From the NCBI GenBank assembly GCA_016748015.1, contig JAAOMT010000571.1:995095-1059094 (forward strand): 64,000 bases of DNA, given 5' to 3'. The position numbers were made by a program, and so were the translations under genes. Of the stretch, positions 3,401 through 55,487 are shown one piece after another. Source of the DNA: Geosiphon pyriformis uo1. Its lineage: Eukaryota; Fungi; Glomeromycota. The notes under the pieces are model-generated. The model was not told the origin of the DNA, did not search any database, and saw only the letters and a program-made list of their open reading frames with translations. Within the stretch, counting starts at the first letter, position 1. Every line of letters begins with the position of its first letter.

Positions 3401-6400
3401 CTTCTTGAAATGGCAATGTCAAAGGAAAGCAAAAAGAAACAGAACTTATCTGGACCTCTGACCAAGCTTGGAAAACAAAAAATGACTACAATGAACAGAC
3501 TAATTGGAAATAAGAAGAGGAAAATAATGGAAAGAGAAAAGGGAAAGAAACCACACTGGAAGAGACCACCAGTACCAGCAAAATAACTAGTGGCTGGACC
3601 AGTTCATACTCAGTCCATGAGCCACTACCACAACCACCATATATTCCACTCAAATGCAAAGACTGTGGAAAAAAACTTTTTTTCATGGGAGCATGAATCG
3701 CACCAGATGAAGACCACTGAACACGAACCCATTACTATTGTAAGCTATGTCATAGAAAATGCTATGACTACTCAAAGAAACAGGGCAAGTAGGACAATGA
3801 ATCATGTCTCGCTTGCAGTGAACAACTGCTCAATGAAAGAATGTGGAATGACATTTCTGGTCAAGAAAGAACATATGATGCTTTGTGCCAATACATGATT
3901 CTCATTAGTGACTGGGTGAGTCATGGTACTCTGATTACAGCAGCATGGCACCGAGCACTTGATTGTTTAGACAGTTACTTCCACAACAAAAAGGAGATCT
4001 AGCAAATGGCCAATGCTAAAGTAGAAGGTGCTACACCCAGTGAAATACTGGAAATTAAGAACAATTCTCCAGAACTGGTCGATATCATTCGTATTCCTAA
4101 CTCAGATGCTTTTATGAACAAAGAAACAGGTCCAGAAGACTTCTACAAATACTACCAAAATTTGGCACCTACAAGATAAGAGCAGGAGCAGCATTTAGAA
4201 CAACTAAACATCTGATTATGTAACCACTGTTTGATTCCCTGTGACTTCCAATATTGTAATGAGTGTGACTTTATTTACAATTCACTACCACACATAATCT
4301 ACACAATTCTAGAAGAAATTGAACCAATCAGCAGCTGCGCATCTGAATTGGAATCACTGTTTGATCTTGATTCAAACTCCAACAACGACAACAAAAACAC
4401 TGGTTCTAGCTTCATTCAAATTGGTAATAACAACGATGACAATTCCAACTCAGATTCAAACTCTGACCCAAAATATGAACAATACATTGCACTGCCAGAC
4501 CTTTCTAAAGAACAGGAGTTAAAATCGTATAGTGACAATAATGAAGGTATTATGCCAGAACATGCGCATAATACTGATGCTGGATTTGATCTGAGGTATT
4601 CAGGGAAAGATACCATCAAATTGGAACCACATTTGCACATTTGCATTGATCTGAAAGTAGCATTAGAAATCCCAACAACAACAATGGTTCAACTAGCATC
4701 TAGGAATAGTTTAGTGAAAAGAGGGATTAATATAAGAGGAGGAATAATTGATGTAGGATATATAGGAAATATCATTGCTATGCTACAAAATGACTTTGAA
4801 AAAGCCTATATCATAGAGCCAAATGAAAAAATAACACAGGCAATATTTTTGCCTCTGGTGAAAATAGCACAATTAGTATTAATAGAAAATAAAGAGGAAT
4901 TAGGAATAACAGCAAGAGGAATACAGGAATTTGGATTAACAGGTAGAATAAATATATCAGTCAATATAGCAGAAAAAGAAATTGTTGACCAAGGAGAAAT
5001 TATTTCAACAGGTCAAGCAATTTTCATTTCACTATATGGCCAGTACATGGTAGGGATAAAGTAGAAAGTAAAAGAACAGAATCAGATTTTTGAAGCAGAA
5101 CCAACTCTTTGTGAATCAGGAGAGATTGGACTCATCAATCTCCATATACCAGCCAAAGATTACAGTCACATCAAAATTCCCATCTATAATAACACAGGAA
5201 ATGTCATAGTAATACCAGCCAAAACTACTATTGGATACTTAAGCATTGAAATAGAGGATCAACCACCAAGCACCATTCCAGACTTTCCACAGCTTTGTGG
5301 ATATGTTGATATCATATTACAAACAATATACAGATAAAGTGAATGTTATTTGCTCCAACCAGAGCAATTGGAACAAATGAACATGGGAAACTTAGACCCA
5401 CTTTAACATATGCAGCTTAAGATGTTGCTTAATAATTTTAATGACATCTTTGTCAGCAAAAACGAATTTGGCAGAACTGACATCATCCAACATCAGATCA
5501 AAACTGAAGATGTGATGTCGATCAAACAAAGAGCATACAGAGTGCCACCAACCAGCCATGAGATCATTCATCAAGAAATCAATCGAATGCTTGACAATAG
5601 GCTAATTCAGTCATCAATAAGTCTATGGTTATTACCAGTAGTACTCATCTATAAGAAAAATAGAAAAATCCGATTTTGTGTAGACTACAGGAAACTCAAT
5701 AGTATAACTTGTGGAAACAGCTATCCAACTTCACAAATACAAAAACTATTCGATGTTTTCGGTGGAAACAAATGGTTCTCAACGTTAGACTTGGATAGTG
5801 GTTACTGGCAAGTAGCCATGAATCTAGCCAACAAAGAGAAAACGGCATTCACTATAAGAGAAAGGAATTTTGAATTTGAAGTAATGCCATTCGGCTTAAC
5901 CAATGTCCCAGCAACTTTCCAATGGCTAATGGAAATTGTGTACACTGGTTTATTGTGGAAATCAGTAGTTGTATACTTAGACAACACCAATGTATTCTCA
6001 AAAACATTTAATGATCATCTTCATTATTTTCAATAAGTATTCAAAAGACTGTGACAAGCAGGATTAAAGCTAAATGCTACCAAGTGCTTCTTTGGCAAAA
6101 CAGAACTGAAGTTTCTGGAACATATAGTTAGCAAAGACGGTATTAAGACAGACCCAGACAAGATAGAAATAGTAAAGAACTTTCCAGTGCCAACCAATGT
6201 GACTGAACTAAAATCATTCTTGGGATTTGCAAGCTATTATCATCACTTCATCAAAAACTTTTTTAAAATAGCTCAGCCACTTAACCATCTACAAACCAAG
6301 AATGTGAAATATGAATGAACAGAAACGCAACAAAAAGCTTTTGACATTTTAAGAGGAAAGTTCATTCAAGTGCCAGTATTAATCTATCCAGATTACAACA

Positions 6401-6777
6401 AACCATTCATCATTACTACTGATGCATCAGGTCAAGCATTGAGAGCAGTACTATCTCAGAAAAAACCAGATGGAAGAAAACATCCAGTAACATTTGCCAG
6501 CTGAGGCTTAACACCAGCCAAAAAGAACTATGGAACACTGGAACAAAAACACTTAGCAATATACAGGGCAGTCATAAAATGAAAAGAATACTTGAGCCAG
6601 AAGTTTGAAGTGTACACAGATCACAAAGGATTAATATCACTCCAAAAACAAGAATTTGGAGATAGAAGACAGTCAAGATGGAAAATGGCACTTGCACTAT
6701 ATACTTATACCATATATTATAAAAAAGGAAAAGACAATAGAAATGCTGATGGTTTGTCGTGAATGAGACAAATCTAA
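487..6777 (+). pseudogene. Element A gag-pol, single frame: N-domain, capsid, CCHC, aspartic protease, Cys-rich domain, dUTPase, RT, RNase H; many transition-derived stops
   Basis: ORF fragments 427, 1864, 2605, 4231 and 5410 share one frame. Motifs: CHNCDKQNHIRANC, ILDSDSAGSII, DAGFDL/SRNSL/GGIIDVGYIGNI, RFCVDYRKLN, MPFGL, VYLDN, NADGLS. Confidence 0.9.
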
Positions 6778-6838
6778 GAACATTTCAACCCAAAAATATA
6801 ACAAAACCAAAACAATACTCACGAAAATATAACAAAAG

Positions 6839-8221
6839 ATAAACACACAAAAATATCAACAACTTCAACTTTATATAGATATTTAACAGTTCAAGGAAAA
6901 ATTATCTCAACCAGAACAAAAGAGGATCAAACAACAATCCAAATATTTTATCACTCACCAAAATATATTTTATCAGAAAAATAGAAAAGATTCAGATCAA
7001 CCAACCAGAGTAATTACAGAACCAGAAAAAAAGACAATACTGTTCAACATGCACTCAGATCCAGCTGCAAGACATTTTCATAAAGAAGCAACCATAGAAA
7101 GAACCAGAAAGAGATACTATTGGCCATTGATATATCCAGACATCATCCAATATGTTCAAAATTGTGACACTTGTCAGTGAAGAGGAGAAACAAGACCCAG
7201 TGAACTATTAAGATCAATCAAAGTGGGACAATCATTTGACTGTATTGGAATTGATTTAGTCAGACCATTAACAATCACCAGCAGAGGAAACAGATACATA
7301 GCAGTAGCCATAGACTATCTCACTAAATGGCCAGAGACAAAAGCAATTCAAAGAGTGGATGCAGAATCTATTGCCGAATTCATTCATTAGGATTTGATTT
7401 GTTGACATGGATGTCCAAAAGAATTATTATCAGATCAAGGAACGCATTTTGTGAACAGAACATTAACAGAATTGAGCCAAAGATTCGGAATTTAAAGACC
7501 ATTATTATCACCATACCATCCACAAACCAATGGATTAATCAAAAGATTCAACAGAACATTGTGTGAAGCAATAGCTAAGCTCAGCCAAGAAAACCAGAAC
7601 GATTGGGATTTGTTGATATCATCAGTACTATTTGTTTATCGGACAATAAAGCAAGATACTACACAAGCAACACCATTTGAATTAGTATATAGTAGAATAG
7701 CAATACTACCAATAGAAATAGAAGTCAGCACATACCCAACCAAACCAATAACAAAAGAGAATTTCAAAAACATATTGTTGAGAAGAACATATGACTTAAT
7801 GGAAACATTAGAAAACAAATGACGGAGAGCAGCTGATAACATACAAAAATCACAAGAGAAACAAAAAAAAAGACATGATAACCAACTACCAGATAAACCA
7901 GTTAAACTTAAGATTGGAAACAAAGTACTACTACATCGTACCAAAGTGAAAAAACAATGGAATGGAAAATTTGACCCCAAATAAGACAGACCATTCCACA
8001 TAGAAAAAATTCTAGGAAATGGAGCTTACAAATTAAGATTGAATAACAAAATCTTGACCAAAGCAGCACATAAAGATTAACTGAAACCATACTACCATAT
8101 AGCATCATCATCTACCAGTAATATTCCACAACTGGGAGTACAAAGAATACTAGTCCAATCAGATAAGATTCTATGAGATCTGAAACCAATTATCATCATT
8201 GATAACAACATGTCCAATTGA
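6839..8221 (+). pseudogene. Element A integrase (HHCC, DDE, GPY/F) in its own frame; start ATG mutated to ATA
   Basis: Frame differs from RT/RH. GIDLV, YLTKWPE, SDQGTHF, PYHPQTNG; 1383 nt, the same length as in B and D. Confidence 0.85.
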
Positions 8222-8245: not shown

Positions 8246-8905
8246 ATGGTCAACACAATAGAAAAATGCAGAAAAATGGAAATTACCACCAACATCTATT
8301 CATTAGCACAATAAATTTTTCAATTAATCCAACACCAGGAGATGGAAATTACAATCAATCAACAAACCATTTGATACAAAAGTATTGCAAGGATACCACA
8401 ACACAAAGTACAGAGAAAACTCAAAAATGTTGTTGACAAGATTATGACCAAAGTAAAATTGGCCATAAAAGAACAACGAATAGTCAAATTACACCAAGAA
8501 CTTACTGGAGAAACTTGGACTTGGTGGATGCAATAATTTCCAAAAAATTATTGTTATTTTTACTTGGAACAACACGTGAATATCCAGAACTTATATACGA
8601 ATAAAACAAAATGGTTATTTGACACAACAATACTATAACAACTAGAATATTTTGTAAGAAAAAACAACTTATCCACACAAGCTTGAGCTATTTACCAGCT
8701 ATATATGGGATTTCAAGACTGACCAGAAATTTTATTCAACACAGTAATGGATACAGTTACGAGTAATCAATTGGAAAAAATGATCAACACCCAATTTGAA
8801 GAACTATAAACTCAAATAATACAAGTAATACTCAAAAAAAAAGTTCAAAAAATAATTCAAGAGGGAGAATTAAAAGAGTTAGATTTCAATAGAGCTCAAT
8901 ATTAA
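8246..8905 (+). pseudogene. Element A ORF3, unknown ~219-aa accessory protein (not Env-like)
   Basis: AAC ATG G start conserved in A, B and D; continuous frame once CAA/CGA>stop changes are reverted; ends at the PPT. Confidence 0.7.
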
Positions 8906-10672: not shown

Positions 10673-12055
10673 TCAATTGGACGTGTTGTTGTTAATAATA
10701 ATAATTGGTTCCAGATCTCATGGAATCTCATCTGGTTGGACCAGTATTCTCTGTACTCCTAATTGTGGAATATTACTGGTGGATGATAATGCTATATGGT
10801 GGTATAGTTTCAGTCAATCTCCATGTGCTGCTTTGGTCAAGATTTTGTTATTCAATCTTAATTTATAAGCTCTATATCTTAGAATTTCTTCTATGTGAAA
10901 TGATCTGTCTCATTTGAGGTCAAATTTTTCACTCCATTGTTTTTCCACTTTGGTACAATGTAGTAGTATTTTGTCTCCAATTCTGAATTCAACTGGTTTA
11001 TTTGGTAGTTGGTTATCATGTCTTTCTTTTTGTTTTTCTTGTGACCTTTGTATGTTATCAGCTGCTTTTCGTCATTTGTTTTCTAATGTTTCTATTAAGT
11101 CATATGTTCTTCTTAACAATGTGTTTTTGAAATTTTCTTCTGTTATTGGTTTGGTTGGATATGTGCTGACTTCTATTTCTACTGGTAGTGTTGCTGTTTT
11201 ACCATATACTAATTCAAATGGCATTGCTTGTGTAGTATCTTGCTTCATTGTCTGATAAGCAAATAGTACTGATGGTATCAACAAATTCCAATCATTCTGG
11301 TTTTCTTGGCTGAGTTTAACTATTGCTTTACACAATGTTCTGTTGAATCTTTCGACTAATCCGTTGATTTGTGGATGGTATGGTAATGATAGTGGTCCTT
11401 TAATTCCAAATCTTTGGCTCAATTCTGTTAATGTTCTGTTCACAAAATGAGTTCTTTGGTCTGATAATAATTTTTTTGGACATCTATGTCGACAAATCAA
11501 ATCTTAATGAACAAATTTGGCAATGGATTCTGCATCCACTCTTTGAATTGCTTTTGCCTCTGGCCATTTAGTGAGATAGTCCATGGCTACTGCTATGTAT
11601 CTGTTTCCTCTGCTGGTGATTGTTAATGGTCTGACTAAATCAATTCCAACACAGTCAAATAGTTGTCCCACTTTGATTGGTCTTAATGGTTCACTGGGTT
11701 TCATACCTCCTCTTCGCTGACAAGCATCACAATTTTGAACATATTGGATGATGTCTGGATACATTGATGGCCAGTAGTATCTTTTTCTGGTTCTTTCTAT
11801 GGTTGCTTCTTTGTGAAAATGTCCTGCTGTTGGATTTGAATGCATGTTGAATAGTATTGTCTCTTTTTCTGGCTCTGTAATTACTCTGGTTGGTTGCTTT
11901 AGATCTTTTCTATTTTTCTGATAAAGTATATTTTGGTGAGTGATAAAATATTTTTATTGTTGTTTGATACTCTTTCATTCTATTTGAGATAAATTTTCCT
12001 TGAACTGTTGAGTGTTTATATAATATTACAATTGTTGATATTTTTGTATGTTCAT
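10673..12055 (-). pseudogene. Element B integrase ORF (ATG at 12055)
   Basis: MNIQKYQQ... start; HSNPTAGH, CDAC, GIDLV, DYLTKWPEA, PYHPQINGLVERFN. Confidence 0.87.
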
Positions 12056-12230
12056 CTTTTGTTATATTTTTTATTGGTATTGTTCTGGTTTTGTTATATT
12101 TTTTTTTTGTTGAAATGTACTTTAAATTTGTTTCATTTGCAACAAACTGTCAGCATTTCTGTTGTTTTTTCTCTTTTTATAATGTATAGTATAATTATAT
12201 GATGCAAGTGTCATTTTCCATCTTGACTGT

Positions 12231-13190
12231 TGTTACCAGTAGAATTTTAGCTATTAATTAGCATGAAATTACTTATAATTTCTATAATTAATCAGTATAT
12301 TAATATCATTTCAAATTATTATTTATTATTTAATCAATCATCACATATTACAATTCAATTAAAATAATCTAATTAGTATAACAGAAAGTAGGATGATCAA
12401 ATTACACAATACTCTGAACTTTGTAACATTCAAAAACTCGCCAAAATTTACAGAAATTCGCCGAAATTATGAATAGTTCACCCAAATTAATCAATAGTTT
12501 AGCAAAATAACTTGTAGTTTATCAAAATGTATCTTTAGTTTACCAAAATTTGAGCAAAGAGAAAAAGTGCAAGTTCATAGACTAGTACTACAACAAGTTG
12601 TATAAAAGAAGAGCTTTTCTCTTCTGAAAAATGTATCTTACTTTAGATTTATTACTTAGAACCATTCCTACACACACAAAAAGAAATAAATATCAAATAA
12701 TTCAAAAAACCAAATTCTATAATTATTGCACTTGAAAAATCCTCAAAACCCAACTAACATTTTGAAATTGATTAGCTACCAATTTCAGTAAACTGTTAGT
12801 GACTCCAGGCCTGGATAGAAAACGTTTCCCTTGATAAAATCCTATTTTTTTTACATTTCTTTTCTTTTCTTATTACAATCATTAGGGTAGCCTACAGACG
12901 AGATTCCTATAGAAGAGTTGACTTTCATAGCAAAGTAACTACACATTTTTAGTGAGCTTCCAGATGAGCAATTCCTGGGAAAGAGTTGACATTTACTACA
13001 ATGTAACTACATAAAGTAACTGGCAAAAGAATTGGCCATTCTACTTATAAGCCCAGCAGTTTAAATTATAGAAGATAATTTGAAGAGAAAATTCAGTTAT
13101 TGGAGGTTCAACTACTTCCTGAAAACGTGAATTCACAGCAAATCAACATTACCAACATTTAAGAAAAGAGACCAAAAACCTCCAGTAATA
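12231..13190 (+). repeat. 5' LTR of element C (960 bp)
   Basis: TGTTACCAG...CCAGTAATA; direct repeat of 20950-21938. Confidence 0.93.
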
Positions 13191-16200: not shown

Positions 16201-18840
16201 CTACCAATGGCATTGATCAATAGAGCCATCCAAGAAGATGTCCACCAAATGAAAGAAGCTGAATATATTGAGTATACCATGGAATTAGCTGGATTTGATT
16301 ATAAAGATGAAGTAAAAACCTACCACCAAATTGCAAACCACACATATCTGACCAAAAAAGCTCAAATTCAATGATTAGAGCAAATAAACATTCAATTGTG
16401 TGAAGAATGTGTCATGTCTTGTGATGACCAATGGTGTTTAGAATGTTATGCTCTTAGCATTCCTCTGCCAGATGGGAATAATGAAAATGAAATCGAATTT
16501 GGAGTATCTGAATTAGTAGAAGAACTACCAACCACTCCCATCTATCTTCTTGAAAAGCAACCACCTCTACAACTTAAATATTTTGACAACCATGGCCAAG
16601 GAATCAGACCAGAAAAAGCACACGAAATTGATGCTGGATATGACTTAAGATACCCAGGAAAAGATACTTTAATTCTCCAACCAAAGTCTTTGACAAAAAT
16701 CAATCTAAAAATTGCTCTTGAAATTCTACCAGGAGCAATAGTTCAAATTGCCTCCAGATCATCATTGGCAAGCAAAGGAATTAATATTAGAGGAGGAGTT
16801 ATAGATGCAGGATATACTGGAGACATTACCATCATGTTACAGAATGAGACAGACAAACCATTCAAAATTGAACATGCTGAAAAAATTGCTCAAGCAATTT
16901 ACTTACTCTTAATCAACATTTCGGGTTTACAATCAGTAAACAACAGAGAACAATTGGGAAAAAGTGAAAGAGGAACTCAAGGTTTTGGTTCAACTGGACA
17001 ATTTACAGTTCCAGTAAACATAGCTCTTAATACACAAAATGAATCTCACCAGGTTCTTCAACTTTCTCAACCAATTACCATTTCACTTTTTGGAGAACAT
17101 CACGAAATTTACACTTGTTCAAAACCCACTACTACTCAACAAATCTTTGAATTCAATGAACAAATTTGTTTGAAGCATGAAATATCAATTCCAAACGTTT
17201 ATATTCCCAAAAGAATGAAAAAATTTTGAGTTACATTCTACAACCCCAATAATTACCCTATTGTCTTATTAAACAAATTAGAAATTGGAATCATACATAA
17301 CAATATCTTTCAAGATGAAAACCCTCAAATTGTCTCTAATTTCATCGAAATTGTAAAGCACACTCTACTTCCAAATCCAAATATCATTTCTACTACTGAA
17401 AACTACCACTTGTTGGAAGAAAAACTCTCTCGAATCAATATGGATCCCTTAAAACCTCAACAACAAAGACAATTGAAACAATTGATAGCTGAATTTGCAG
17501 ATATATTTGCAAAAGACAACAATGACTTGGGAAAAACAAACATTGTTCAACATCAGATTCATACAGGAAATGCTCCACTAAAACATCAACAAGCCTATCG
17601 AGTGCCACCTGCCAGCCACTAATTCATCAGAGAAGAGGTCCAAAGAATGCTCAATAATGAATTGATTCAACCATCAAGAAGTCCTTAGGCCTCACCAGTA
17701 GTTTTAGTTAAAAAGAAAAACGGAAAAATCAGATTCTGTGTCAATTATAGACAACTGAATAGTATTACAATTGGAGATGCCTACCCTTTTCCAAGAATTG
17801 ATGACATGCTAGATGCTCTAGGAAAAGCCAAGTTCTTCTCAACTTTAGACTTGGAAAGTGGATACTGGCAAGTCGAAATGGACCCAAAAGACTGACCCAA
17901 AACAGCATTCACCACCCAAGGAGGAAACTATGAGTTCAATGTTATGCCTTTTGGACTCTGCAATACACCAGCAACATTCCAACGACTCATGGATGTTGTA
18001 TATGAAGAACTCTTATGGCAATCAGTAGTTGTTTACCTTGATGACACTGATGTGTACTCACCAAGCTTTGAAGCCCATCTTATTCATCTGCGAGAAGTTT
18101 TTCAACGACTACGGAAAACAGGATTAAAATTGAATATTAAGAAATGTCATTTTGGAAAAACAAGCTTAATCTTTCTTGAACACATGGTTAGCAAAGATGG
18201 AGTCAAACCAAACCCTAGAACAATTAGTGCTGTCAAAAACTTCCAAACCCCAAAAAATACCACAGAGCTACAAGAATTTGTAGGATTAGCCTCCTATTAT
18301 TGAAAATTCATCAAAGGATTCTCAGAAATTGCCAAACCACTCAATTATCTCACCAATAAAAATGTGCCATACAAATGGACTGAAAAACAACAAAAAGCAT
18401 TTGAAACTCTCAAAACAAAGCTAACAACAGCCCCAGTTCTTGCTTACTCAGACTTCAACAAACAATTTCAACTAGCCACTGATGCTTTACACATAGCATT
18501 TGGTGTTATTTTATCACAAATAGATGAAAAGGGGCAAGAACAAATTATTGTTTATGCTAGTAGAACACTCAAACCAACAGAACTAAAATATAGCTCAACT
18601 GAATTAGAAGCTGCCATAGTTATTTGGGCTCTTAAACATTTTCAACAATATCTGAAGAATGGAAAAGAATTTGACATAATAACAGACAACATTGGCCTCA
18701 AATGGCTCAATAAAAAAAAAACTGAACAAAGTGCCAAACAGTCTCAATGGAATGACTTCCTAGCAGACTACAGATATATTGTATACCACAAACCAGGAAA
18801 ACTACATATTAATGTTGATAGCCTCTCAAGAATGAGATAA
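13236..18840 (+). pseudogene. Element C gag-pol (one frameshift near 14240)
   Basis: CHYCGIPEHWKRDC, ILDSGSTGSII, DAGYDL/ASRSSL/GGVIDAGYTGDI/RGTQGFGSTG, VYLDD, FQLATDA, HKPGKLHINVDSLSRMR*. Confidence 0.9.
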
Positions 18841-18903
18841 GATTAATACCAACAACAATTCCACCACAACTTACCAACTTACCAACAAAATAACCAAAAA
18901 AAA

Positions 18904-20289
18904 ATAGATCTCAGAAATTACAGCAATCTTAAAAATTATTTGAAGACTCTTACCATGTTAGAAAACTGGTCTCCAAGTGAAAAACACCACTTACAACACC
19001 AATCAAAACAATATTTCATACACCAGAACAAAATCTATTATAAAAATCACAGAAAACCAAACCAGCCACTCAGATTAATACAAGAGAATGAAAAAGAAAC
19101 AATTTTATACAACATGTACACAGATCCGTCTTCAGCACACTTGGGAAAAGAGGGAACAATTCAAAAAACCCTTGAACATTATTTTTGGCCTCACATACAA
19201 AAAGACATTTGACAATATGTAGAATCTTGTAATAGCTGTCAAAGAAGAGGAGGAACTCACTCCACAGAACCTTTAAATCCAATCAAAGTTGGACAACTTT
19301 TTGACAGAGTTGGAATTGATTTAGTTGGACCATTACCTATCACAACCCAAGGAAATCGTTATATTGCAGTTGCAGTGGATTATCTTACCAAATGGCCTAA
19401 AGCTAGAGCCATCCAAAGAGCAGATGCAAAATCAGTAGCAAATTTCATCTATGAAGACATTATCTGTAGACATGGATGCCCAATTGAACTCTTATCTGAT
19501 CAAGGAACACATTTTGTGAACAACTTGATACAAGAAATTTGTGAATGGTTCAATGTCAAAAGACCTCTATCATTACCTTATCACCCTCAAACAAATGGAC
19601 TTGTAGAACATTTCAACAGAACATTGTGTAAATCTTTAACCAAAGTCTTAACAGACTTTGAGCAGGAATGGGATATCTTTATTTCATTAGTGTTACTAGC
19701 ATACAGAACACTAAAACAAGATACTATAAAACACATACCATTTTATCTTACTTATGGAAGGACAGCAACATTACCAATTAATTTTACAGTGGAAACATAC
19801 CCAGTACAACCAATCAATGAAAAAAACTTTCAAGAGACACTCCAAAGAAGAGCCTACACTCTTCTTAGTACACTGGAAAGAAAAAGAAGAATAGCAGCAA
19901 CTCATATTGAACATTCCCAAGCTCAACAAAAAGAAAGACATGACAACAAATTACCACCTATTACCAACAAATTTAAAGTTGAAAATAAAGTTCTCTTACA
20001 CAGAACTAAGGCTGAAAAACAATAGAGTGAGAAATTTAAAAACAAATGGGATGGACCATTTTATATTCACGAAATTCTAGACAATGGATCATACAAGTTA
20101 AGACTTAATGACAAAATATTAGCAAAAGTTGCACATAGAGACAGATTAAAACACTATCATTCCAGAAACAATCTTGAACCATTAATTCCACAAATTGGTA
20201 CACATTCCCCTTTAATTAATCCTGAAGATATTCCCCAAAATTTAGAACCAATAATTATAATAGAACAACAACCAAACTTGAACACTTAA
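18904..20289 (+). pseudogene. Element C integrase ORF (start reads ATA, probably from ATG)
   Basis: Preceded by TAA GAT TAA and a 63-nt spacer; SAHLG, CNSC, GIDLVGPL, YLTKWPKA, WDGPF; 1386 nt. Confidence 0.85.
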
Positions 20290-20412
20290 ATTTTACAATA
20301 ATTTTCTAATAAAAACACAAAGACAAAAATAGTAAATAATTACAAAACACCCAAACCCAAAAACAAATAAAAACCCCATATCCAAAAATAATTTTTTTTA
20401 TTCTCTCTTTTC

Positions 20413-20432
20413 NNNNNNNNNNNNNNNNNNNN
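20413..20432. other. Assembly gap (20 N)
   Basis: Run of n characters. Confidence 1.
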
Positions 20433-20969: not shown

Positions 20970-21938
20970 CTATTAATTAGCATGAAATTATCCTTATAAT
21001 TCCTATAATTAATCAGTATATTAATATCATTTCAAATTATCATTTATTATTTAATCAATCATCACATATCATGATTTAATTAAAATAATCTAATTAGTAT
21101 AACAGAAAGTAGGATGATCAAATTACACAATACTCTGAACTTTGTAACATTCAAAAATTCGCCAAAATTTGTAAAAAATTTGCCGAAATTTACAGAAATT
21201 TGTTAAAATTATGAATAGTTCACCCAAATTAATCAATAGTTCAGTGAAATAACTTGTAGTTTATCAAAATGTATCTTTAGTTCGCCGAAATTTGAGCAAA
21301 GAGAAAAAGTGCAAGTTCATAGACTACTACAACAAGTTGTATAAAAAAAAGCTTTTCTCTTCTGGAAAATGTATTTTACTTTAGATTTATCACTTAGAAC
21401 CATTCCTACACACACAAAAAGAAATAAATATCAAATAATTCGAAAACCAAATTCTTTAATTATTGCACTTAAAAAATCCTCAAAACTCAACTAATGTTTT
21501 GAAATTAATTAGCTACCAATTTCAGTAAACTATTAGTAACTTCAGGCCTGGATAGAAAACGTTTCTCTTGATAAAATCCTATTTTTTTACATTTCTTTTA
21601 TTTTTTTCTTTTATTTTCTTATTACAATCATTAGGGTAGCCTACAGATGAGATTCCTGTAGAAGAGTTGACTTTCACAGCAAAGTAACTACACATTTTTA
21701 GTGAGCTTCTAAACGAGCAATTCTTGGGAAAGAGTTGACATTTACTACAATATAACTACATAAAGTAACTGGCAAGGAATTGGCCATTCCACTTATAAGC
21801 CCAGCAGTTCAAATTATAGGAGATAATTTGAAGAGAAAATTCAGTTATTGGAGTTTCAACTACTTCCTGAAAATGTAAATTCACAGCAAATTAACATTAC
21901 CAACATTTAAGAAAAGAGACCAAAAACCTCCAGTAATA
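20950..21938 (+). repeat. 3' LTR of element C (989 bp)
   Basis: Direct repeat of 12231-13190 with an extra GCCGAAATT-type unit and a T-rich insertion. Confidence 0.93.
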
Positions 21939-32042: not shown

Positions 32043-33425
32043 TCAATTGGATGTGTTGTTGTTAATGATAATGATTGGTTCCAGATCTCGTGGAATCTCA
32101 TCTGGTTGGACCAGTATTCTCTGTACTCCTAATTGTGAAATATTACTGGTGGATGATGATGCTATATAGTGGTATAGTTTCAGTCGATCTCCATGTGCTG
32201 CTTTGGTCAAGATTTTGTCATTTAATCTTAATTTGTAAGCTCCATTTCTTAGAATTTCTTCTATGTGAAATGGTCCATCTTATTTGGGGTCAAATTTTCT
32301 ACTTCATTGTTTTTCCACTTTGGTACAATGTAGTAGTACTTTGTCTCTAATCCTGAATTCAACTGGTTTATTTGGTAGTTGGTTATCATGTCTTTTTTTT
32401 TGTTTCTCTTGTGACTTTTGTATATTATTAGCTGCTCTTCATTGTTTGTTTTCTAATGTTTCTATTAAGTCATATGTTCTTTTCAACAATGTGTTTTTGA
32501 AATTCTCTTCTGTTATTGGTTTGGTTGAGTATGTGCTGACTTCTATTTTTACTGGTAGTGTTGCTGTTCTACCATATATTAATTCAAATGGTGTTGCTTG
32601 TGTAGTATCTTGTTTCATTGTCTAATAAGCAAATAGTACTGATGATATTAACAAATCCCAATCGTTCTGGTTTTCTTGGCTGAATTTAGCTATTGTTTTA
32701 CACAATGTTCTGTTGAATCTTTTGACTAATCTATTGGTTTGTGGATGGTATGGTGATGATAGTGGTTTCTTAATTCCGAATCTTTGGCTCAATTCTGTTA
32801 ATGTTTTGTTCACAAAATAAGTTCCTTGGTCTAATAATAATTCTTTTGGACATTCATGTCGACAGATCAAATCCTGATAAACAAATTTGGCAATGGATTT
32901 TGCATCCGCTCTTTGAATTGCTTTTGCCTTTGGTTATTTAGTGAGATAGTCCATGGCTACTGCTATATATCTGTTTCCTCTATTGGTGATTGTTAATGGT
33001 CTGACTAGATCAATTCCAACACAGTCAAATGGTTGTCCTACTTTGATTGGTTTTAACAGTTCACTGGGTTTTGTACCTCCTCTTCGCTAACAAGCATCAC
33101 AATTTTGAACATATTGGATGATATCTGGATACATTGATGGCCAATAGTATTTTTTTCTGGTTCTTTCTATAGTTGCTTCTTTGTGAAAATGTCCTGCTGT
33201 TGGATTTGAGTGCATGTTGAATAATATAGTCTCTTTTTCTGGTTCTGTAACTACTCTGGTTGGTTGATTTGGATCTTTTCTATTTTTTTGATAAAGTATA
33301 TTTTGGTGAGTGATAAAATATTTTGATTGTTGTTTAATACTCTTTTGTTCTGTTTGAGATAAATTCTCCTTGAACTGTTGAGTGTTTATATAATGTTAAA
33401 ATTGTTGATATTTTTGTATGTTCAT
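32043..33425 (-). pseudogene. Element D integrase ORF (ATG at 33425)
   Basis: 1383 nt; frame differs from RT/RH; HHCC, DDE and GPF motifs. Confidence 0.86.
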
Positions 33426-33487
33426 CTTTTGTTATATTTTTTGTTGATATTGTTCTGGTTTTATTATATTTTTGGGTTGAAATGTTC

Positions 33488-36400
33488 TTAGATTTGTCTT
33501 ATTCGCAATAAACTGTCAGCATTTCCATTGTCTTTTCCTTTTTTGTAATGTATAGTATAATTGTATAGTGCGAGTGCCATTTTCCATCTTGACTGTCTTC
33601 CATCTCCAAATTCTTGTTTTTAGAGTGATGTTAATCCCTTGTGATCTGTGTATACTTCAAACTTCTGGCTCAAGTATTCTTTCCATTTCATGACTGACCA
33701 GTATATTGCTAAGTGTTCTTGTTTCAGTGTTCCATAGTTCTTTTTGGCTGGTATTAAACCTCTGCTGGCATATGCTACTGAATGTTCTCTGTCGTTTGGT
33801 TTTCTCTGAGATAATATTGCTTCCAATGCTTGGCCAGATGCATCGGTGGTAATGATAAATGGTTTGCTGTGATCTGGATAGATCAGTACTGGAGCTTGAA
33901 TGAGTTTTTTTTTCAGAATATCAAAAGTTTTTTGTTGACTTTCTGTCCATTTATATTTTGTATTCTTGGTTTGCAGTTGGTTGAATGGCTGCACTATTTT
34001 GGAAAAGTTCTTGATGAAACATCAATAATAGCTGGTGAATCCCAAGAATGATTTTAGTTCTGTCATATTGGTTGGCACTGGAAAGTTTTTTACTATCTCT
34101 ATTTTTTCTGGATTCGTTTTGATGTCATCTTTGCTGACTATGTGTTCTAAGAATTTTAGTTCTGTCTTGCCAAAGAAGCACTTTGTTGCATTTAACTTTA
34201 GTTCTGCTCTTCTTAATCTTTCAAACACTTGTTGAAGATAATGAAGATGATTATCAAATGTTTTTGAGAATACATTGGTGTTGTCCAAGTATACAACTAC
34301 TGATTTCCACAATAAACCAGTATTGACAATTTCTATTAGCCGTTGGAAAGTGGCTAGTGTGTTGGTTAAACTAAATAGCATTACTTCAAATTCGAAATTC
34401 TTTTCTCTCGTGGTGAATGCCATCTTCTCTTTGTCAGCTGGATCCATAACCACTTGCCAGTAACTACTGTCCAAGTCTAATGTTGAGAACTATTTGTTCT
34501 TACCAAAAACATCAAATAATTCCTGTATTCGTGGAGTTGAATAGTTGTCTCCATAAGTTATACTATTGAGTTTCTTGTAGTTTACACAAAATTGGATCTT
34601 TCCATTTTTCTTACAAACGAGTACCACTGGTAATGACCATGGGCTCATTGATGGCTGAATTAGCCCATTGTCAAGCATTTGGTTTATCTCTTGACGAATA
34701 ATCTTGTGGCTGGCTGGTAGCATTCTGTATGCTCTTTGTTTAATTGGCATTGCATCTCCAGTTTTGATCTAATGCTGGATGATGTCAGTTTGGCCAAACT
34801 CATTTTCATTGGCAAAGATGTCTTTGAAATTGTTAAGCAATATTTTGAGCTGCATACATTGGAGTGGATCTAAGTTTCCCATGTTCATTTGTTCCAATTG
34901 TTCTGGTTAGAGTAAATAACATTTGTCTTGTCCATAGATTGTTTGTGATGTGATGTCAACATATCCACAAAGTTGTAAAAAGTCTGGAATGGGGTTTGGT
35001 AGTTGGTCTTCTATTTTTGTGGTTAAATATCCGATGGTGGTTCCTTCTGGTATGTTGATGACATTATCAGTGTTGTTGTAGATAGGAATTTTTATGCGGC
35101 TATAATCTTTGGCTGGTATGTGAAGATTGATGAATCCAACTTTTCCTGATTCACAAAAACTGACTTCTGCTTCAAAAATTTGTGCTTGGTCTTTTTTCTT
35201 CTTTTCTATTGCTAGCATGTACTGGTTATATGGTGAAATGGAAATAGCTTGACTGGTTGAAATAATTTCTCCTTGACCAACAATTTCTTCCTCTGCCATA
35301 TTAACTGGTATATCTATTCTACTCATTGATCTGAATCCCTGTATTCCTCTTACTGTTATTCCTAATTTCTTCCTCTTTTTCACTAATACTAACTGAGCTA
35401 CTCTAACCAGAGGCAGGAATATTGCCTGTGCTATTTTTTTGTTGGGCTCTATTATATAGGCCTTTTCTGAGTTATTTTGTAGCATAGCAATGATATTTCC
35501 TATATATCCCATGTCAATTATTTCTTCTTTTATATTAATCTCTCTTTTTGCTAGACTACTCCTAGATGTTAATTGAATCATTGTTGTTGCTAGAATTTCC
35601 AGTGCTATTTTCAAATCGATGCAGGTACATGTATGTGGTTTCAATTTGATGGCTTCTGTTTCTGGATATCTTAGATCAAATCCTGCATCAGTATTGTGTG
35701 CATGTTCTGGCATAATACCTTTCTCATTGTCACTATACCATTTCAACTCTTGTTTTTTGGAGAGATCTGGTAGTGCAATGTATTGTTTATAGTTTAAATT
35801 GGAGTTTGAATCTGAGTTTGAATCGTCTTTGTTGTCATTGCCATTTTGAACAGAGCTGGAACTGGTGTTTTCATCGAAGTCATTGAAGTCTGGATCACGA
35901 TTGATTAGCGATTCTGATTCCAATGCACAGCTGCTGATTGGTTCTTCTTCTTCAAGGATTGTGTAGATTATGTGTGGTAGTAGATTGTAAATGAGGTCAC
36001 AATTGTCACAATATTCAAAGTTACTGGGAATTAAACAATGGTGACACAGTCTTGTATTTAACTGTGCTAGCCATTATTCTTGCTTTTCTCTAGTGGGTGC
36101 CAAGTTTTGGTAGTGTTCATAAAACTCTTCTGGTTCCAGAAAATTTATGACTGGCTCTATGTTCTAGTCAAGCTCAATGGGTTCTGGTGGGTTGTTTTTA
36201 ATTGTCCTGATTTCTTCTGACAACGCACCTTCAATTTTGGTGATTGCCATTTGCCATAATTTATCATTGTCATGTGGACAACTGTCCAATTGCTGTACAG
36301 TTCTTCTCCAGGTGGCTTTTATGGGTGTTCCTTTCTCGACCCAGTCGCTGATGAGAATTGTGTATTGGCAGGACACATCGCACGTTTCTCCTCTCCCCAG

Positions 36401-39750: not shown

Positions 39751-40585
39751 TGTTACAAGTGATTATTTCTGCTGTTGAATTAAATAACAAACCCCTAACT
39801 TGGTGCTCAAAAGCTACTTCCATGGATGAAATTTTACAAGTGTTGTATCTAAAGGTTTTGATGGAGTCTTTTGTATAATGGACAGAGATTCAATAGGGTC
39901 GATAGTAGATGTATCTTTTCAAGAGTTTTTCCAATTTTTTTCTCAGCATGGTGGCCGGATTTAGTCTGGCAGTCGTGTCTTTCTGGTAAGCTATCCAATA
40001 ATATATAAAATCCTACCCTTATTTCTGGGTCTTTTACCAGGCTATCCTTGATGTCAATAACTTAGCACTTAATTTTTTTAATCAATTAATATACAACAAC
40101 AAAATCAAAGAAAGAAAGAAAATAAAATAAAGAAAATAAAAATAAAGAAAATAAAGAAAATAAGCCAAGGCAATTTGGTACATTAGTATCTCGTCAATAG
40201 CCATGATCAAAAGCTATTGTTCCAGCATAGTTAAGTATCAATTACTATCAACATGAAGTGTTGATAATAGAGAGTGGATTAAGATATGGAATAATTATTT
40301 ATTTGATGATTGGGAACTGAAATGTTGCTTAGATTAAATCTAAACTGAGAGGTCTGTCTTTTCAGCTTCTAATCCTATTACTATATATACATAATTGAGA
40401 TTCCTCAATTTTTCAATTCTTTGTGACAGGAATTCTGCAATTCCTCGTCGGGGAATTCTGAAATTCCTGGAATCCTGCAATTCCTCTGAAAAAAATTCTG
40501 GAATTCCACATTTACTATGTCTACCTCTAATTGGCTAATATCTACTGACTAATAATACTATATTTCCTATATTCTATGAGTAACA
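39751..40585 (-). repeat. 5' LTR of element D (835 bp; deletion in the GGAATTC array)
   Basis: TGTTACA...GAGTAACA; PBS adjacent. Confidence 0.92.
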
Positions 40586-41000
40586 ATGTTCTAATTAAGA
40601 TTTTCTTAACTATCACAGCCCAATTTGAATATCCAACAAATTTTTTGAAATTAATATTTACTAAGATCTATATATCTTTAGCCTTTTCAGAAACCTGTAA
40701 TAAACTTGATTCAGAAGTGAATATTTTTTAATAATCTTAACAAATTTAGAAAGAGTAAATGTCTTCTTAAAAACATTAATTTATAAAAATAATTTTTTAA
40801 CTACAGTGCACTTTTTTTGAAATATTTTTTCAATATCTTTATTCAATTCAATATTTAAAACAAAAGACTTTTTAACAGACACATTGATTAAATTTTTTAG
40901 AAAAGAGAAAAAACACCAAGAGAATATTCAAAAAATATTATTGTTATTATTCAAGAAGTTGATTTTTTTTAATGGTTTTTTCAGAACTTTTTTGGTCTTA
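40586..41000 (-). pseudogene. Decayed ORF relic, probably LINE ORF1 (upstream piece)
   Basis: Reads ...KKLFL*INVFKKTFTLSKF...FTSESSLLQVSEKA...NWAVIVKKILIRT and joins 30455 in frame; upstream limit approximate. Confidence 0.45.
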
Positions 41001-42082
41001 ACCTGCAGACTTTTTAGCATTTAGTTAAATTTTTTTTTATTAAAAGCAATACTTTTATCATAATTAACACTAGTCTTCTTTACCAAATACTTTTTTTTTT
41101 ATATTAATACTATTGAATTTAATAGTATTATTAGTTTTAGAGTTCTAAGATTAACTACTCAAAGTCTTAACAGAAAGTACTTTGTTTTTAATATTATCTT
41201 TTAATATATCATCTTTTTTTTTTAAAGAGAACTTGTTTGCTATTATTATTAATGTTAGAATTTTTAATAAACTTTTTTATAACAGCAATACTTAGATCAT
41301 TAATAGTCTTATAATTAAACAAAAAAAGTTTAAATTTATCATTCTAAATAATTAAAAAATTTCTTCTTAAAAAAATGTATTCTTTAATAAGTTTTCAGGT
41401 ATAAGAAAGAAAAAATTTTTTTTATAACATATTTAAAATTTAAAAAAAAAGTTTTATTAAAAACTAAAAAATATAAAAAACAAATATATATAATTTTAAA
41501 AATATATATAATTAAAATTAATAATAATAATAATAACAATATTAAAATGAAATAGAATTAATAAGTACTTAATATATAGCTAAATAAGTATTTAAAGAAT
41601 TTTTTTTAGGTTTTATTAAATAAAACTGTTTTTTAAAATATTATTATTCATAAAATAATCTGAAAATAAGTAATAATTAAATATAATATAAATTAACTAA
41701 TAATAAAATAAAAATTTATCAAATTATATAATATTAAAAATTATAAAAATACCAAAAATTTTAGCAATAAATTAAGAAAAGTTTAAAAATTATTAGAAAT
41801 CTTAAAAGTTTTGTATTATAAAAATTAATGTATATATAATAATATTATTATTAGAAACAAAAAAAAACAATAAAAATTTAATTTAATTCTTATTAAAAAA
41901 TTTTAATGATCAAAAATCTAATATTTAAAGTAAATAATTTTTTAATAAAACTATTTTAATTAAATATTACTTAATTTTTATAAATTATTTTATTAAAATT
42001 TACTTATATTAAATTAATATTAATATTATTAATATTACATTACTTATAATATTAAAATAATAATTCTTAATTATAATTATTT

Positions 42083-43984
42083 GCAGATCTTTAGTTAATG
42101 CCCTCACTATCCTTTGCTTTTCTCTTTTCATATTAATATCAATCTTTCAGATAATTTTTTGGCTGGCATTGTCCAGATTTTTTTGGAATATGATCTTTCT
42201 CTGGGTGGTCTTGTAACCAATGCTTTTTATTTTCAAAACAGAATCTCTATGTCTGTTGTTTTTGGTGAGCCCATCTTTTATAAATGTGTTTTTTCACTTC
42301 AGTGTTATGGAATTGCTTTTGTTGAACAGCTTTGCAATTGTACTGGTTTTGTTTTCGAATAGAAAACTTTCAAATAGTGAAAAAGATTGGACTTTCAAGA
42401 CCCAGTTTCTCATTGGTTTGATGTTTTTGTTTGTTTTCTGAATGATTCTGGGTTATTTTCTGTTTGCAATCTTCTGTTGCCAGATGTTGGTTTGTTTAAT
42501 ATTCTTGAGTTTTATGAGTTTGAAGTTGTGTGTGATCATCTGTTGGAAGTTAATTCCAGTCATCTTTCTTTGTTTATGGATGGTTCTTTAAGTAGGCTAG
42601 ATACTCTTGGTATGAAAGCTAGTGCTGCTGTTTTTTTTAAGGACATTGATTTGAGTTTGGGTCTAGAAGTGTCTGAGTTGGTTTTTTCTACTATGGTAAA
42701 GTTGCAGGCTATTGTTCTGGCTTTTAAGTATATTCCTTCTTCTTGTTCAGTCAACTTGTTTTTGGACAGCCAGGCTGCTTTGGATGTATGCAAATCAGAA
42801 TTCATGTTGACTTATCCAAATTTTAGGAATCGGTGTTGGATCAAGTGTTACCATATTGCTAATGTCATTCATTATAAGAATTTGGATGTTAATTGGGTTA
42901 AAATTAGAAATCACTCTGGTGTCTTGAATAATGAGCATGCTGATGCTTTTGCTGGAACTGCTGCATTCTTTAATATGTATCTTTCTTATGTAATCAATGA
43001 ATATTTTCTTAGGGCTGATAGTACTACAGTATTTGGTAATTCTAAGCATTTTGTTCGTGGTGTTTTCCGATCCATTCACTGTGTGTGCTAGGAGATTGGT
43101 TCTGGTTTCTGGGTCTTAGTAGATAGCCTGCGTGCTGATGTTGATTGGTTCAGATCTTCTTTGGTGTGGCATCTAGACTTTTATTTGGCTGCTGGTTTCA
43201 CTAGTACTCAGACTGCTGGCTTTTGAACATATTTTATGAAGGCATTGTATCATTATCTTCCGATTGCTGTATGTAAGTGTCTTTATAATAGAAGTTATCC
43301 CAGTGTAATATGTCTATTTTGCAGCAATGTTGAGATCTCAAACCATGTATTTTCTTGCTCATTTGATGCTACTGGTTGTGCTTGGTTGGTGGAAATTTAT
43401 GTATCTACTTGGAAGGTATGCTTGAGTTTGTTTTGCTCTTTTTTGTGCATTTCATGGTTGCTTTCTACTTGCATCTCTAATGTTGTTGTTAGTGCAGCTC
43501 TGTGTAAGGGCTTTGTTTTTAAGGAGTAATATCATGAATCTGTTACTGTTTTTAAAAACTCTAAGATTGTGGCTTAGAATATTGTGACCTTTGTACATAA
43601 GTTTTGTTTTGCATTTCATAATGATGTTTGGCTAGTACGTGCTAAGTACTGGGCTGTTATGGAGAAAGGTGGCATAATTTTGCATAATGGTTTTGTTTCT
43701 GTTTCAATCTCTGGTTTTTCTTTGGTGCTTTTAGCTGGTGTGATTAGGTTGTTGGGTATTATAGATGTATTTAGTGTTAGTTTTGGGTTTTGTAAATCTT
43801 GTTTATTCTTTTCAGGTATAGATAATATGGTTTTAGTACATATAAGTGCCTAGTATTGTTTTGACTAGCCTGAGTGGCTGGTCACATGTAGAAAATGCAT
43901 GATTCACACCTAGTTTAAATTATTTGTATGATGTATTGTATTAGGTAGTGTTTGGACTTCATTTGTTAAAATTGAAAAAAAAAA
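42083..43984 (+). mobile_element. 5'-truncated non-LTR retrotransposon (LINE) 3' end with RNase H, CCHC motif, 3' UTR and A-tail; decayed
   Basis: RNase H motifs LFMDGS, KLQAI, FLDSQAAL, WVKIRNHSGVLNNEHAD; CLFCSNVEISNHVFSC; A-run at 43975-43984. Confidence 0.8.
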
Positions 43985-55286: not shown

Positions 55287-55487
55287 ATTCCTCGTCCTCC
55301 AAGTTAACCGTTGTCTGGTAACTTTCTCCAAAAAGCGCCCCCTAGAGCAAACTAATCAAGTTTTAATATGGTAACTTACCATGAATTATCAATATTTGTC
55401 AAGAACCAATTTTAAAATAAATTGTTGACTAATACTTAAATAAGATGTAGTGTAACCCGAACAAATTCATCACTTTCTTCAGCAACC
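55287..55487. promoter_or_regulatory. Probable bidirectional promoter (TRAF7-like / SNAPC1-like)
   Basis: Divergent start codons with 201 bp between them. Confidence 0.55.

Follow-up and report, generated by a model that had tools for sequence, protein, structure and literature searches.

The question raised by this locus is whether a Ty3/Gypsy integrase can be encoded as a gene of its own, or whether the stop codons that separate it from Pol are only marks of decay. In textbooks, and in the reviews PMC3248453 and PMC6317226, the integrase of LTR retroelements is treated as part of the Pol polyprotein. This position matters, as it sets both the stoichiometry of the integrase and its route into the particle. 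We analysed a stretch of 64,000 nt from Geosiphon pyriformis uo1 (GCA_016748015.1, contig JAAOMT010000571.1, positions 995,095 to 1,059,094 of the forward strand), hereafter the window, which holds four copies of such elements. Copies A, B and D belong to one family (family A), and the divergent copy C to a second one (family C). The initial annotation had proposed that in all four copies integrase (INT) is an ORF separate from Pol, placed after a stop just downstream of RNase H (RH), and that the element is polycistronic; as a whole, this reading is partly supported by the results given below.

Copy A lies on the forward strand. Upstream of its reverse transcriptase segment (5410 to 6036; Pfam PF00078, E 1.6e-19), Pol includes a segment with a dUTPase domain (4231 to 5064; PF00692, E 1.2e-14). 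Translation and an alignment of 33 copies place the C-terminal end of RH, in the Pol frame, at 6601 to 6774; it reads ...NADGLS*MRQI, the arginine of the LSR motif being mutated to TGA in this copy. Pol ends with a TAA at 6775 to 6777, and a 61-nt non-coding spacer follows (6778 to 6838; 36 A, 13 C, 3 G and 9 T), in which the Pol frame meets another TAA and the INT frame a TAA two codons 5' of the INT start. The INT ORF then extends from 6839 to 8221 (461 codons including the stop, with nine internal stops) and starts with ATA, the start being ATG in most family-A copies. The Pfam domains Integrase_H2C2 and rve were matched on a stop-free family-A copy (L019).

The other two family-A copies are on the reverse strand. 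Copy B (10673 to 12124), which forms an inverted repeat with copy A (repeat I3), has its TAA at 12124-12122, a 66-nt spacer at 12121-12056 and INT at 12055-10673, with an ATG start, 461 codons including the stop and eight internal stops. Copy D (32043 to 33490), a representative of the abundant 62-nt subfamily, has its TAA at 33490-33488, a 62-nt spacer at 33487-33426 and INT at 33425-32043, again with an ATG start and 461 codons including the stop, and with seven internal stops. The coordinates first given for these three stops and for the spacers of 61, 66 and 62 nt were correct on re-checking, and so were the INT lengths of 461, 461, 461 and 462 codons for A, B, D and C, provided that the stop is counted.

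Copy C, on the forward strand, is flanked by a 5' LTR at 12272 to 13190 and a 3' LTR at 20993 to 21938, which pair as direct repeats D11-D15 with 89-95% identity. Its junction had to be corrected. The TAA at 18838 to 18840 is indeed present 63 nt before the ATA, as annotated, but it is specific to this copy, the codon being CAA in the other family-C copies; in the alignment of 30 genomic copies the family-wide Pol stop is found at 18844 to 18846 (TAA in 27/30, TAG in 3/30). What had been taken for a 63-nt spacer with further stops is instead a CA-rich linker of 57 nt (18847 to 18903; 19 codons) that shares its frame with RH as well as INT and, in most copies, is devoid of stops; L047, for example, is open over 480 codons from just 3' of the stop. 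The INT ORF of copy C (18904 to 20289) has 462 codons including the stop, an ATA start and two internal stops. The start is ATG in about half of the family-C copies, and INT is stop-free in 5 of the 89 genomic copies scored.

All four window copies are dead, with 7 to 56 stops in the upstream 1000 codons of the RH frame, and the copies of these elements in the Geosiphon genome are all decayed. The stops and frame changes could then be ascribed to post-insertion decay of elements with a fused Pol, whether by C>T/G>A hypermutation, by indels in homopolymers or by errors of assembly. Such decay would agree with the stops and transitions that fill the window copies and with the fact that CAA>TAA is a change of the expected type, one of the 33 aligned copies (L027) having CAA. 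The ancestral state of the stop was based on per-site tallies across genomic copies. With a junction-spanning pattern search, TAA was found in 536 family-A copies (reversed-pattern control, 0) and a sense codon at the stop site in only four in-register copies (2 CAA, 2 AAA), meaning that TAA accounts for more than 99% of 540 junctions; in the aligned set the count was 32/33. Family C has a stop at the same position, TAA or TAG in 30/30 copies. Genuine decay sites, in contrast, are polymorphic, since C>T and G>A post-insertion changes stand at intermediate frequencies in the same alignments, and a CAA located two codons 5' of the family-A stop was kept as CAA in nearly all copies. The near-fixed TAA of family A, together with the stop present in all 30 family-C copies, thus indicates that the stop is ancestral and not a product of decay. 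These tallies contradict the scenario that the initial annotation had set against its own claim, namely an ancestral CAA followed by an open linker of 3n nucleotides. In addition, the spacer-length classes are common to whole subfamilies and not sporadic.

The same layout exists in intact elements of other species. Elements from Rhizophagus irregularis and from soil metagenomes have gag, PR-RT-RH, INT (about 420 aa) and ORF4 as four clean reading frames. One R. irregularis element (L062/L063) is present in seven independent run assemblies and, in the NCBI genome, has LTRs of 716 bp that are 99.4% identical; other intact examples are L066, L152, L153, L154 and one further contig. As for proteins, the closest Pol homologues (56-100% identity, 940-1039 aa) lack rve, whereas more distant ones contain it, and the best 120 INT homologues are all INT-only proteins of 359-453 aa. 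A tblastn comparison of the R. irregularis ORF4 with the ORF located 3' of INT in the window gave no detectable similarity. The decay reading, which the junction tallies reject, is also contradicted by these intact elements and by the split being a clade-wide trait on the INT tree (see below); we regard its probability as negligible.

The elements have the usual hallmarks of Ty3/Gypsy: the long terminal direct repeats described above for copy C and for the R. irregularis relative, the domain order RVP_2, RVT_1, RT_RNaseH, then Integrase_H2C2 and rve (Pfam, window ORFs and relatives), and an integrase with HHCC and DD35E motifs, whose residues H72, H79, C109, C112, D139, D199 and E235 are invariant in 30 INT sequences. 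Of 30 diverse INT sequences, at least 90% keep Met1. INT inside the Pol polyprotein, a usual though not formally defining trait of the class, is absent here, the whole clade having a stop 3' of RH, a spacer and a separate ORF that starts with ATG. No chromodomain (PF00385) was detected on the family-A INT or in the 120 closest INT homologues, and this domain occurs only in distant fused relatives; a dUTPase is carried by both families A and C. On the INT tree the split elements form a single clade (SH-aLRT 95; 15 rows, 14 split and 1 undetermined), with the classical fused-Pol elements outside. As placed by their sequences, both window families belong to a monophyletic non-chromodomain Ty3/Gypsy lineage that is also found in Rhizophagus and in many soil-metagenome contigs. 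The dN/dS of INT between families A and C was 0.22; for other INT pairs pS was saturated (0.77-0.84), with pN of 0.19-0.40. INT is under purifying selection, and the split layout has been kept under it through deep divergence. Altogether, the genome-wide tallies, the intact elements, the phylogeny and the selection test support and extend the structural claim: INT forms a cistron of its own that has its own start codon, goes back to before the two families diverged and is in no fixed frame relative to Pol; the initial claim of a separate ORF that does not result from decay is thus upheld.

Throughout the lineage, the Pol frame (PR-[dUTPase]-RT-RH) is closed by a stop located 2-4 codons 3' of the xDxLSR motif. 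Where fused relatives have the RH-INT linker peptide, the split elements have a short non-coding spacer, and INT begins at a conserved ATG with a strong initiation context and the N-terminus MDxxxYxxLxxYL. The RH-to-INT distance in the fused relatives, about 70-100 nt, agrees with the spacer length of the split elements. From the RH stop to the INT ATG, intact elements usually have 57-93 nt; two intact-looking ones have long gaps of 365 and 596 nt (L071 and L065, respectively). Among the matches listed, the spacers of 100 family-A copies measured 60 (2 copies), 61 (34), 62 (33), 63 (24), 64 (6) and 66 nt (1). Subfamilies with 61, 62 and 63 nt comprise dozens of copies each, so that a tabulation modulo 3, as had been suggested, shows all three classes at the level of whole subfamilies. 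The INT-minus-RH frame difference also takes all three values in the intact elements, in line with the variable frames first reported. The A/C-rich, G-poor character noted for the spacer holds for both window families and for L079; as a clade-wide signal it was rejected (mean G of 0.17 5' of the ATG vs 0.13 on the 3' side).

We then considered whether recoding could carry ribosomes from Pol into INT, through readthrough of the stop, frameshifting or bypass. Three lineages (family C, L069 and L153), in which an open linker follows one in-frame stop, speak for such a Pol-INT fusion, as does the apparent use of a -1 overlap between gag and pol (90 nt in L062, where a search for an X_XXY_YYZ slippery heptamer found none). 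However, most lineages have INT in another frame and Pol-frame stops within the spacer. The INT frame is closed 2-35 codons 5' of the ATG, and the closing stop is located at or 3' of the Pol stop in every element except L154; an INT frame that opens at or after the Pol stop leaves no frameshift window. L154 alone has a short overlap, its INT frame being open from 19 nt 5' of the Pol stop, and might have room for a frameshift. Furthermore, the frame relation switches between close subfamilies, each of which has been amplified, and the family-C context TAA TAC CAA does not resemble the commonly known readthrough contexts. Obligate frameshift or readthrough is not supported by the sequences, and we consider recoding a highly improbable general route; some readthrough fusion may take place in family C, L069 and L153.

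Removal of the spacer from some of the transcripts, as an intron like that of plant Ogre elements, would also lead to a fused RH-INT protein. A length of 57-93 nt is typical of fungal introns, and Ogre provides a precedent for a split pol mended by splicing (PMC6317226). However, no GT-AG pair able to remove the stop and restore the INT frame was found in L066, L068 or family C. The candidates of other elements differ in position from one element to the next, their donors are poor, and their use would remove conserved RH or INT residues. In most elements the stretch from the LSR motif to the stop contains no GT. Splicing would also leave the conserved Met1 and its Kozak context unexplained. 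An Ogre-type intron is not supported by these sequences and appears to us about as improbable as recoding.

Looking at the INT start, we observed a purine at -3 in 18/21 elements and a G at +4 in 18/21, that is, a strong Kozak context. Conserved blocks, GGAYTA..TTTG..TAACCCAAC, are found directly 5' of the INT ATG in the R. irregularis-type group, and one sub-lineage has a bulged hairpin 2-20 nt 5' of the INT AUG. This hairpin is 98% paired, shows compensatory changes in 5/6 pairs and includes sense-strand G.U pairs, and its score was matched by 0/500 shuffles. Conserved spacer motifs vary by sub-lineage and are absent from the window families, which have plain CA-rich spacers. A covariance model of the hairpin matched only its nine source loci, with none in the window, and Rfam gave no match to spacers from 12 related loci and no relevant hit in positions 1-40000 of the window.

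What best explains the whole is a split-pol lineage in which ribosomes probably initiate independently at the INT AUG and yield a free integrase, with no need of protease cleavage of Gag-Pol. The route that we prefer would be translation from the full-length polycistronic RNA, by termination-reinitiation or by spacer-mediated internal ribosome entry. INT initiation would be assisted by RNA elements that differ between lineages and are placed just 5' of the AUG, and the downstream ORF4 would be expressed in the same way. The short gaps and, in one sub-lineage, the covarying hairpin lend such translation from the full-length RNA indirect support. Since INT would have no covalent link to Gag, a non-covalent route to the cDNA would be needed, possibly through binding to Gag, RT or nucleic acid. 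A more specific and still tentative proposal is that of a polycistronic Metaviridae branch in which INT and ORF4 would be translated from genomic RNA through dedicated reinitiation or IRES elements, for which the TAACCCAAC-type box and the bulged hairpin with its covarying pairs are candidates, and in which INT would join the replication complex non-covalently. Against reinitiation speaks its usual low efficiency in eukaryotes once an ORF as long as about 1000 codons has been translated, and the gaps of 365 and 596 nt are a poor fit to its coupled form.

Such long gaps would be tolerated if INT, probably with ORF4, were produced from a subgenomic mRNA, either started at an internal promoter close to the spacer or derived by splicing of the 5' leader to an acceptor 5' of the AUG. 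The conserved ATG and strong Kozak context would suit cap-dependent scanning, the blocks directly 5' of the ATG in the R. irregularis-type group are compatible with it, and retroelements offer precedents in errantivirus env and foamy-virus pol, whose mRNAs are spliced from a donor in the 5' leader to an internal acceptor. However, there is no conserved AG acceptor 5' of the ATG and none at all in the last ~30 nt of L066 and L068. All seven short Logan contigs containing the R. irregularis INT, from runs of unspecified type, were colinear with the genomic element, and no leader-INT splice junction was seen in them. The covarying hairpin, for its part, shows that the sequence 5' of the AUG is functional at the RNA level, something not required of a DNA promoter. 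Subgenomic RNA is a close second to translation of the full-length RNA, possible but on the unlikely side.

With such a layout, INT production and delivery must differ from the ways described for Ty3/Gypsy elements. A full-text literature search, of incomplete coverage and therefore no proof of novelty, found no account of a gypsy integrase encoded apart from Pol. If the polycistronic reading is true, the elements use an expression and assembly strategy undescribed for LTR retrotransposons and conceptually intermediate between gypsy and caulimovirids. The existence of a large, old and recently active lineage with a detached INT raises the questions of how a third and a fourth cistron are translated on a eukaryotic RNA and how free INT is recruited to cDNA, for both of which the intact R. 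irregularis element is a concrete test system. A free-standing INT cistron is also a plausible stepping stone to Ginger-type integrase-derived DNA transposons, or to INT loss as in caulimovirids. Finally, annotation pipelines turn such an element into an 'integrase-less Gypsy' and an orphan 'DDE integrase' gene (compare the NCBI names of the INT homologues), and this misnaming distorts gene and TE counts in the genomes of arbuscular mycorrhizal fungi, where these families have thousands of copies.

How does this lineage compare with known systems? With classical Ty3/Gypsy elements (Ty3, Tf1, fungal gypsy) it shares the LTRs, a CCHC gag, the order PR-RT-RH-INT, the HHCC and DD35E integrase and a gag-pol overlap suggesting -1 frameshifting. 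In these elements INT is the C-terminal part of Pol, is packaged as Gag-Pol and is released by the protease, whereas here it is a cistron with its own AUG, followed by a fourth ORF, and families A and C have a dUTPase. Foamy viruses translate the whole of Pol (PR-RT-IN) from a spliced mRNA and package it without Gag fusion. The likeness would lie in a pol-derived enzyme that is initiated apart from Gag and has to be packaged with no Gag fusion; the difference is that here only integrase is detached. Caulimoviridae, also members of the Ortervirales, have several close, non-overlapping ORFs that are reinitiated on one long RNA with the help of the TAV transactivator, and they have no integrase. 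The closely spaced, non-overlapping ORFs are common to both, and their reinitiation on one RNA would be a further likeness; here, however, an integrase is present and no TAV-like factor was identified; to assign this role to ORF4 would be pure speculation. In Ogre-type elements, as here, a stretch with stops, tens to hundreds of nucleotides long, interrupts the polyprotein coding region as a stable lineage trait (PMC6317226). In our elements, however, the interruption separates RH from INT, a GT-AG intron cannot be drawn in any consistent way, and the start codon of the downstream ORF is conserved. The dictyostelid non-LTR element NLTR-B has its APE, RT and RH in separate ORFs, the one for RT being devoid of a start codon (PMC5911963). 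It thus resembles the lineage described here in that enzymatic domains that are normally fused are located in separate ORFs, but it belongs to another class of retrotransposons, and the detached ORF of our elements has a conserved AUG.

Nested Ty3/Gypsy copies fill the first 40 kb of the window, and dUTPase, RVT_1, Integrase_H2C2 and rve were matched by Pfam on the longer open pieces. The initial annotation had proposed that in four of them (A, B and D of family A, and C of the divergent family C) Pol (PR-RT-RH) ends at a stop and is followed by a spacer and a separate integrase (INT) ORF, as in copy A (stop 6775-6777, spacer 6778-6838, INT 6839-8221, + strand). Recomputation returned the same coordinates, spacer lengths and INT codon counts for copies A-D. 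All four copies are dead: INT contains 7-9 internal stops in copies A, B and D and 2 in copy C, and the Pol frame is also interrupted many times. We thus share the caveat, raised at the time, that for the window alone common stops are weak evidence.

A dUTPase domain lies between protease and RT in both families (4231-5064 and 16396-17229); it is missing from the R. irregularis relatives that share the split integrase, and Geosiphon-labelled gag-PR proteins with dUTPase occur among distant matches (P0181). A short N run is found at about 20410-20430, within copy C, 3' of its integrase. Extreme AT stretches flank the repeat nest (40001-46000; GC 0.19 at 40-42 kb, 0.09 at 44-46 kb), which is consistent with old repeats having been erased almost completely by C>T/G>A change. 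Beyond the nest, host gene fragments encoding DUF2045 (47904-48497), a C3HC4 RING finger (54942-55331, - strand) and a 5MP/BZW-type HEAT domain (59034-59831, - strand) look like intron-containing eukaryotic genes.

Stops and frame changes of this kind could reflect decay or assembly error of elements in which RH and INT were fused in one ORF. Thirty further family-A and 30 family-C junctions were fetched from the genome assembly (128 Mb, ~33% GC, 792 contigs) and aligned, and copies were tallied per site. The TAA after AGA-CAA-ATC was present in 32/33 family-A copies, among which sites with evident transition damage, the TCGCGA block for instance, were polymorphic. Post-insertion change (window 6700-6900, genomic copies L002-L060) consisted mostly of transitions: CpG sites yielded TpG and CpA products (e.g. 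TCGCGA to TCGTGA, TTGCAA or TCACAA), and G>A also occurred outside CpG, where it turned the integrase start from ATG to ATA in roughly one-third to one-half of copies. A degenerate pattern of stop, spacer and start retrieved 536 genomic family-A junctions with TAA (compare with 0 in the reversed control), and four in-register copies with another first base (two CAA and two AAA). The family-C stop was TAA in 27 of the 30 aligned copies and TAG in 3. The TAA annotated at 18838 in copy C does exist but is a CAA>TAA change confined to that copy, and the stop of the family is at 18844-18846; the supposed 63-nt spacer with further stops gives way to a 57-nt linker that shares the frame of RH and INT and contains no stop in most of the 30 copies, one of which (L047) stays open over 480 codons, counted from directly after the stop. 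The copy tallies and the intact elements described below exclude decay or assembly error; a CAA-type open linker later closed by indels or damage, named initially as the refuting case, is contradicted by the 536 TAA junctions against 4 sense ones and by the layout that intact relatives share.

As had been claimed from the window copies, INT occurs in three frames relative to RH. In the first 100 of the 536 family-A junctions, spacers of 60, 61, 62, 63, 64 and 66 nt were counted in 2, 34, 33, 24, 6 and 1 copies, respectively. These length classes match distinct sequence variants and are thus subfamilies, each amplified, meaning that all three Pol-INT frame relations are compatible with proliferation. 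The 61-nt type has a second TAA in the Pol frame inside the spacer, and its INT frame is shut by a TAA two codons 5' of the ATG.

A search with a stop-free family-C integrase gave 996 matches. The best 120 were all 359-453 aa long with integrase domains only, and included R. irregularis and R. clarus entries named 'DDE-type integrase' at NCBI; named protein relatives came from Rhizophagus, Ambispora, Acaulospora and Geosiphon, which points to a glomeromycotan fungus as the probable host. Complete elements were present in the genomic context of such INT-only relatives. In R. irregularis (L062/L063), gag (70-1827) has 90 nt in common with the PR-RT-RH ORF, which lies in the -1 frame and ends in '...NVDSLSRIR' and TAG (4860-4862); INT (4949-6208) follows in the third frame after an 86-nt gap, its frame closed 4 codons 5' of the ATG, and a fourth ORF (ORF4, 205 aa) occupies 6271-6888. 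This RH-INT junction was found again in seven independent run assemblies. The NCBI genome copy has 716-bp LTRs that are 99.4% identical, so the family was active recently. The reference-genome copy (L147:4366-12689, BDIQ02000008.1) carries two stops within pol and L062, from other runs, is 99.7% identical to it and fully open; intact and broken alleles thus coexist among isolates or nuclei. Further intact four- or three-ORF elements, with Pol identity of 57-72%, were L066, L152, L153, L154 and one contig without DNA. Among Pol homologues, the closest (56-100% identity, 940-1039 aa) contain PR, RT and RH and no rve, which is present in those at 48% identity or less.

Eighty metagenome loci found with an integrase profile were sorted by layout. 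At 42% or more identity to the R. irregularis integrase, the INT frame was shut 2-21 codons 5' of the conserved ATG in every locus reaching the N-terminus, with RH-stop-to-ATG gaps of 30-596 nt (mostly 62-89 nt) in every frame relation. Loci at 37% or less with enough upstream sequence mostly had RH and INT in one frame with hundreds of open codons, the exceptions being L096, L101 and L105. On the integrase tree, the split elements, families A and C included, form a clade (SH-aLRT 95) of 15 rows, 14 split and one undetermined at a contig end, with L082, L090 and L096 as further split branches close by. The sporadic rows that look 'split' within fused clades differ hardly at all from fused copies, which indicates decay. 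The distance from RH end to integrase N-terminus in fused relatives (~70-100 nt) equals the split spacer length. The best reading of the spacer is therefore that it once coded for the RH-INT linker and has since become non-coding.

Across 30 diverse integrases, Met1 was kept in at least 90% and the HHCC and DD35E residues were invariant; of 21 elements compared for AUG context, 18 had a purine at -3 and 18 had G at +4. Stop-free family-A and family-C integrase copies gave a dN/dS of 0.22, an upper bound since neutral changes after insertion are present in both; the other pairs had saturated synonymous sites (pS 0.77-0.84) and a pN of 0.19-0.40. Integrase has stayed functional in the split configuration, and the sequences show that it forms a cistron apart from Pol, with a conserved start codon of its own.

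Among published cases of an interrupted pol, the Ogre-type intron (PMC6317226) comes closest, but an intron across the junction fails as an explanation: L066, L068 and family C have no GT-AG pair that would take out the stop and bring INT back into frame, and candidates in other elements lie at inconsistent positions and would remove conserved residues. Frameshifting could carry ribosomes from Pol to INT; however, the overlap window is absent in all but one element (L154, 19-nt overlap), and Pol and INT keep no constant frame relation. Stop readthrough is conceivable in family C, L069 and L153, whose linker is open behind a single in-frame stop, but being limited to these three lineages it cannot be the general mechanism.

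Rfam gave no match in the spacers of 12 related loci and no relevant one in window 1-40000. Nine metagenome elements of one sub-lineage share a ~40-nt motif 2-20 nt 5' of the integrase AUG, a bulged stem-loop (L072:4443-4510, L073:163-232, L075:564-632, L080:470-537, L083:153-221, L085:1-54, L092:470-538, L094:3-66 and L076:2-69) in which an outer helix is combined with an 11-nt purine bulge (GAAAGCGWAAG) and a 6-bp hairpin whose loop reads CANNGUGA. The motif covaries strongly: pairing in the hairpin is 98%, compensatory changes occur in 5/6 pairs, and 0/500 shuffles reached this level; the outer helix shows a G-C to A-U switch and a U.G pair that works on the sense strand only. The motif had no Rfam match, is absent from the window and is confined to its sub-lineage. 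Directly 5' of the ATG, the R. irregularis-type group has GGAYTA..TTTG..TAACCCAAC in common while the remaining spacer diverges, and AATAACCAAAC in family C and ATATAACAAAAG in family A occupy this position. The covarying motif and conserved boxes point to putative RNA-level cis elements adjoining the AUG on its 5' side.

ORF4 (~205-223 aa; L062:6271-6888, L066:7014-7637, L152:4972-5631, L153:5353-6024, window 8246-8905) lies 3' of integrase, at a distance of 18-82 nt in intact relatives. Pfam gave no domain for it, and it evolves fast, as tblastn matched it neither from one sub-lineage to another nor with the ORF in the window; it would be another downstream cistron in need of its own initiation. 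The short Pol-INT and INT-ORF4 gaps, with the motif and boxes 5' of the AUG, lead us to favour, tentatively, reinitiation or internal entry on the full-length RNA as the way in which INT is translated. What speaks most against tight coupling is the size of the gaps in L071 (365 nt) and L065 (596 nt). Close behind comes INT made from a subgenomic RNA, to which we give only slightly less weight. That integrase would reach the replication complex by a non-covalent route follows logically, as pure inference.

The literature consulted, an incomplete sample and hence not proof, describes integrase as part of Pol and reports no lineage of gypsy elements in which integrase is initiated on its own. By every structural criterion tested on their sequences, the split elements are unquestionably Ty3/Gypsy, and yet they would depart from the usual expression strategy of this family, in which integrase is Pol-borne.
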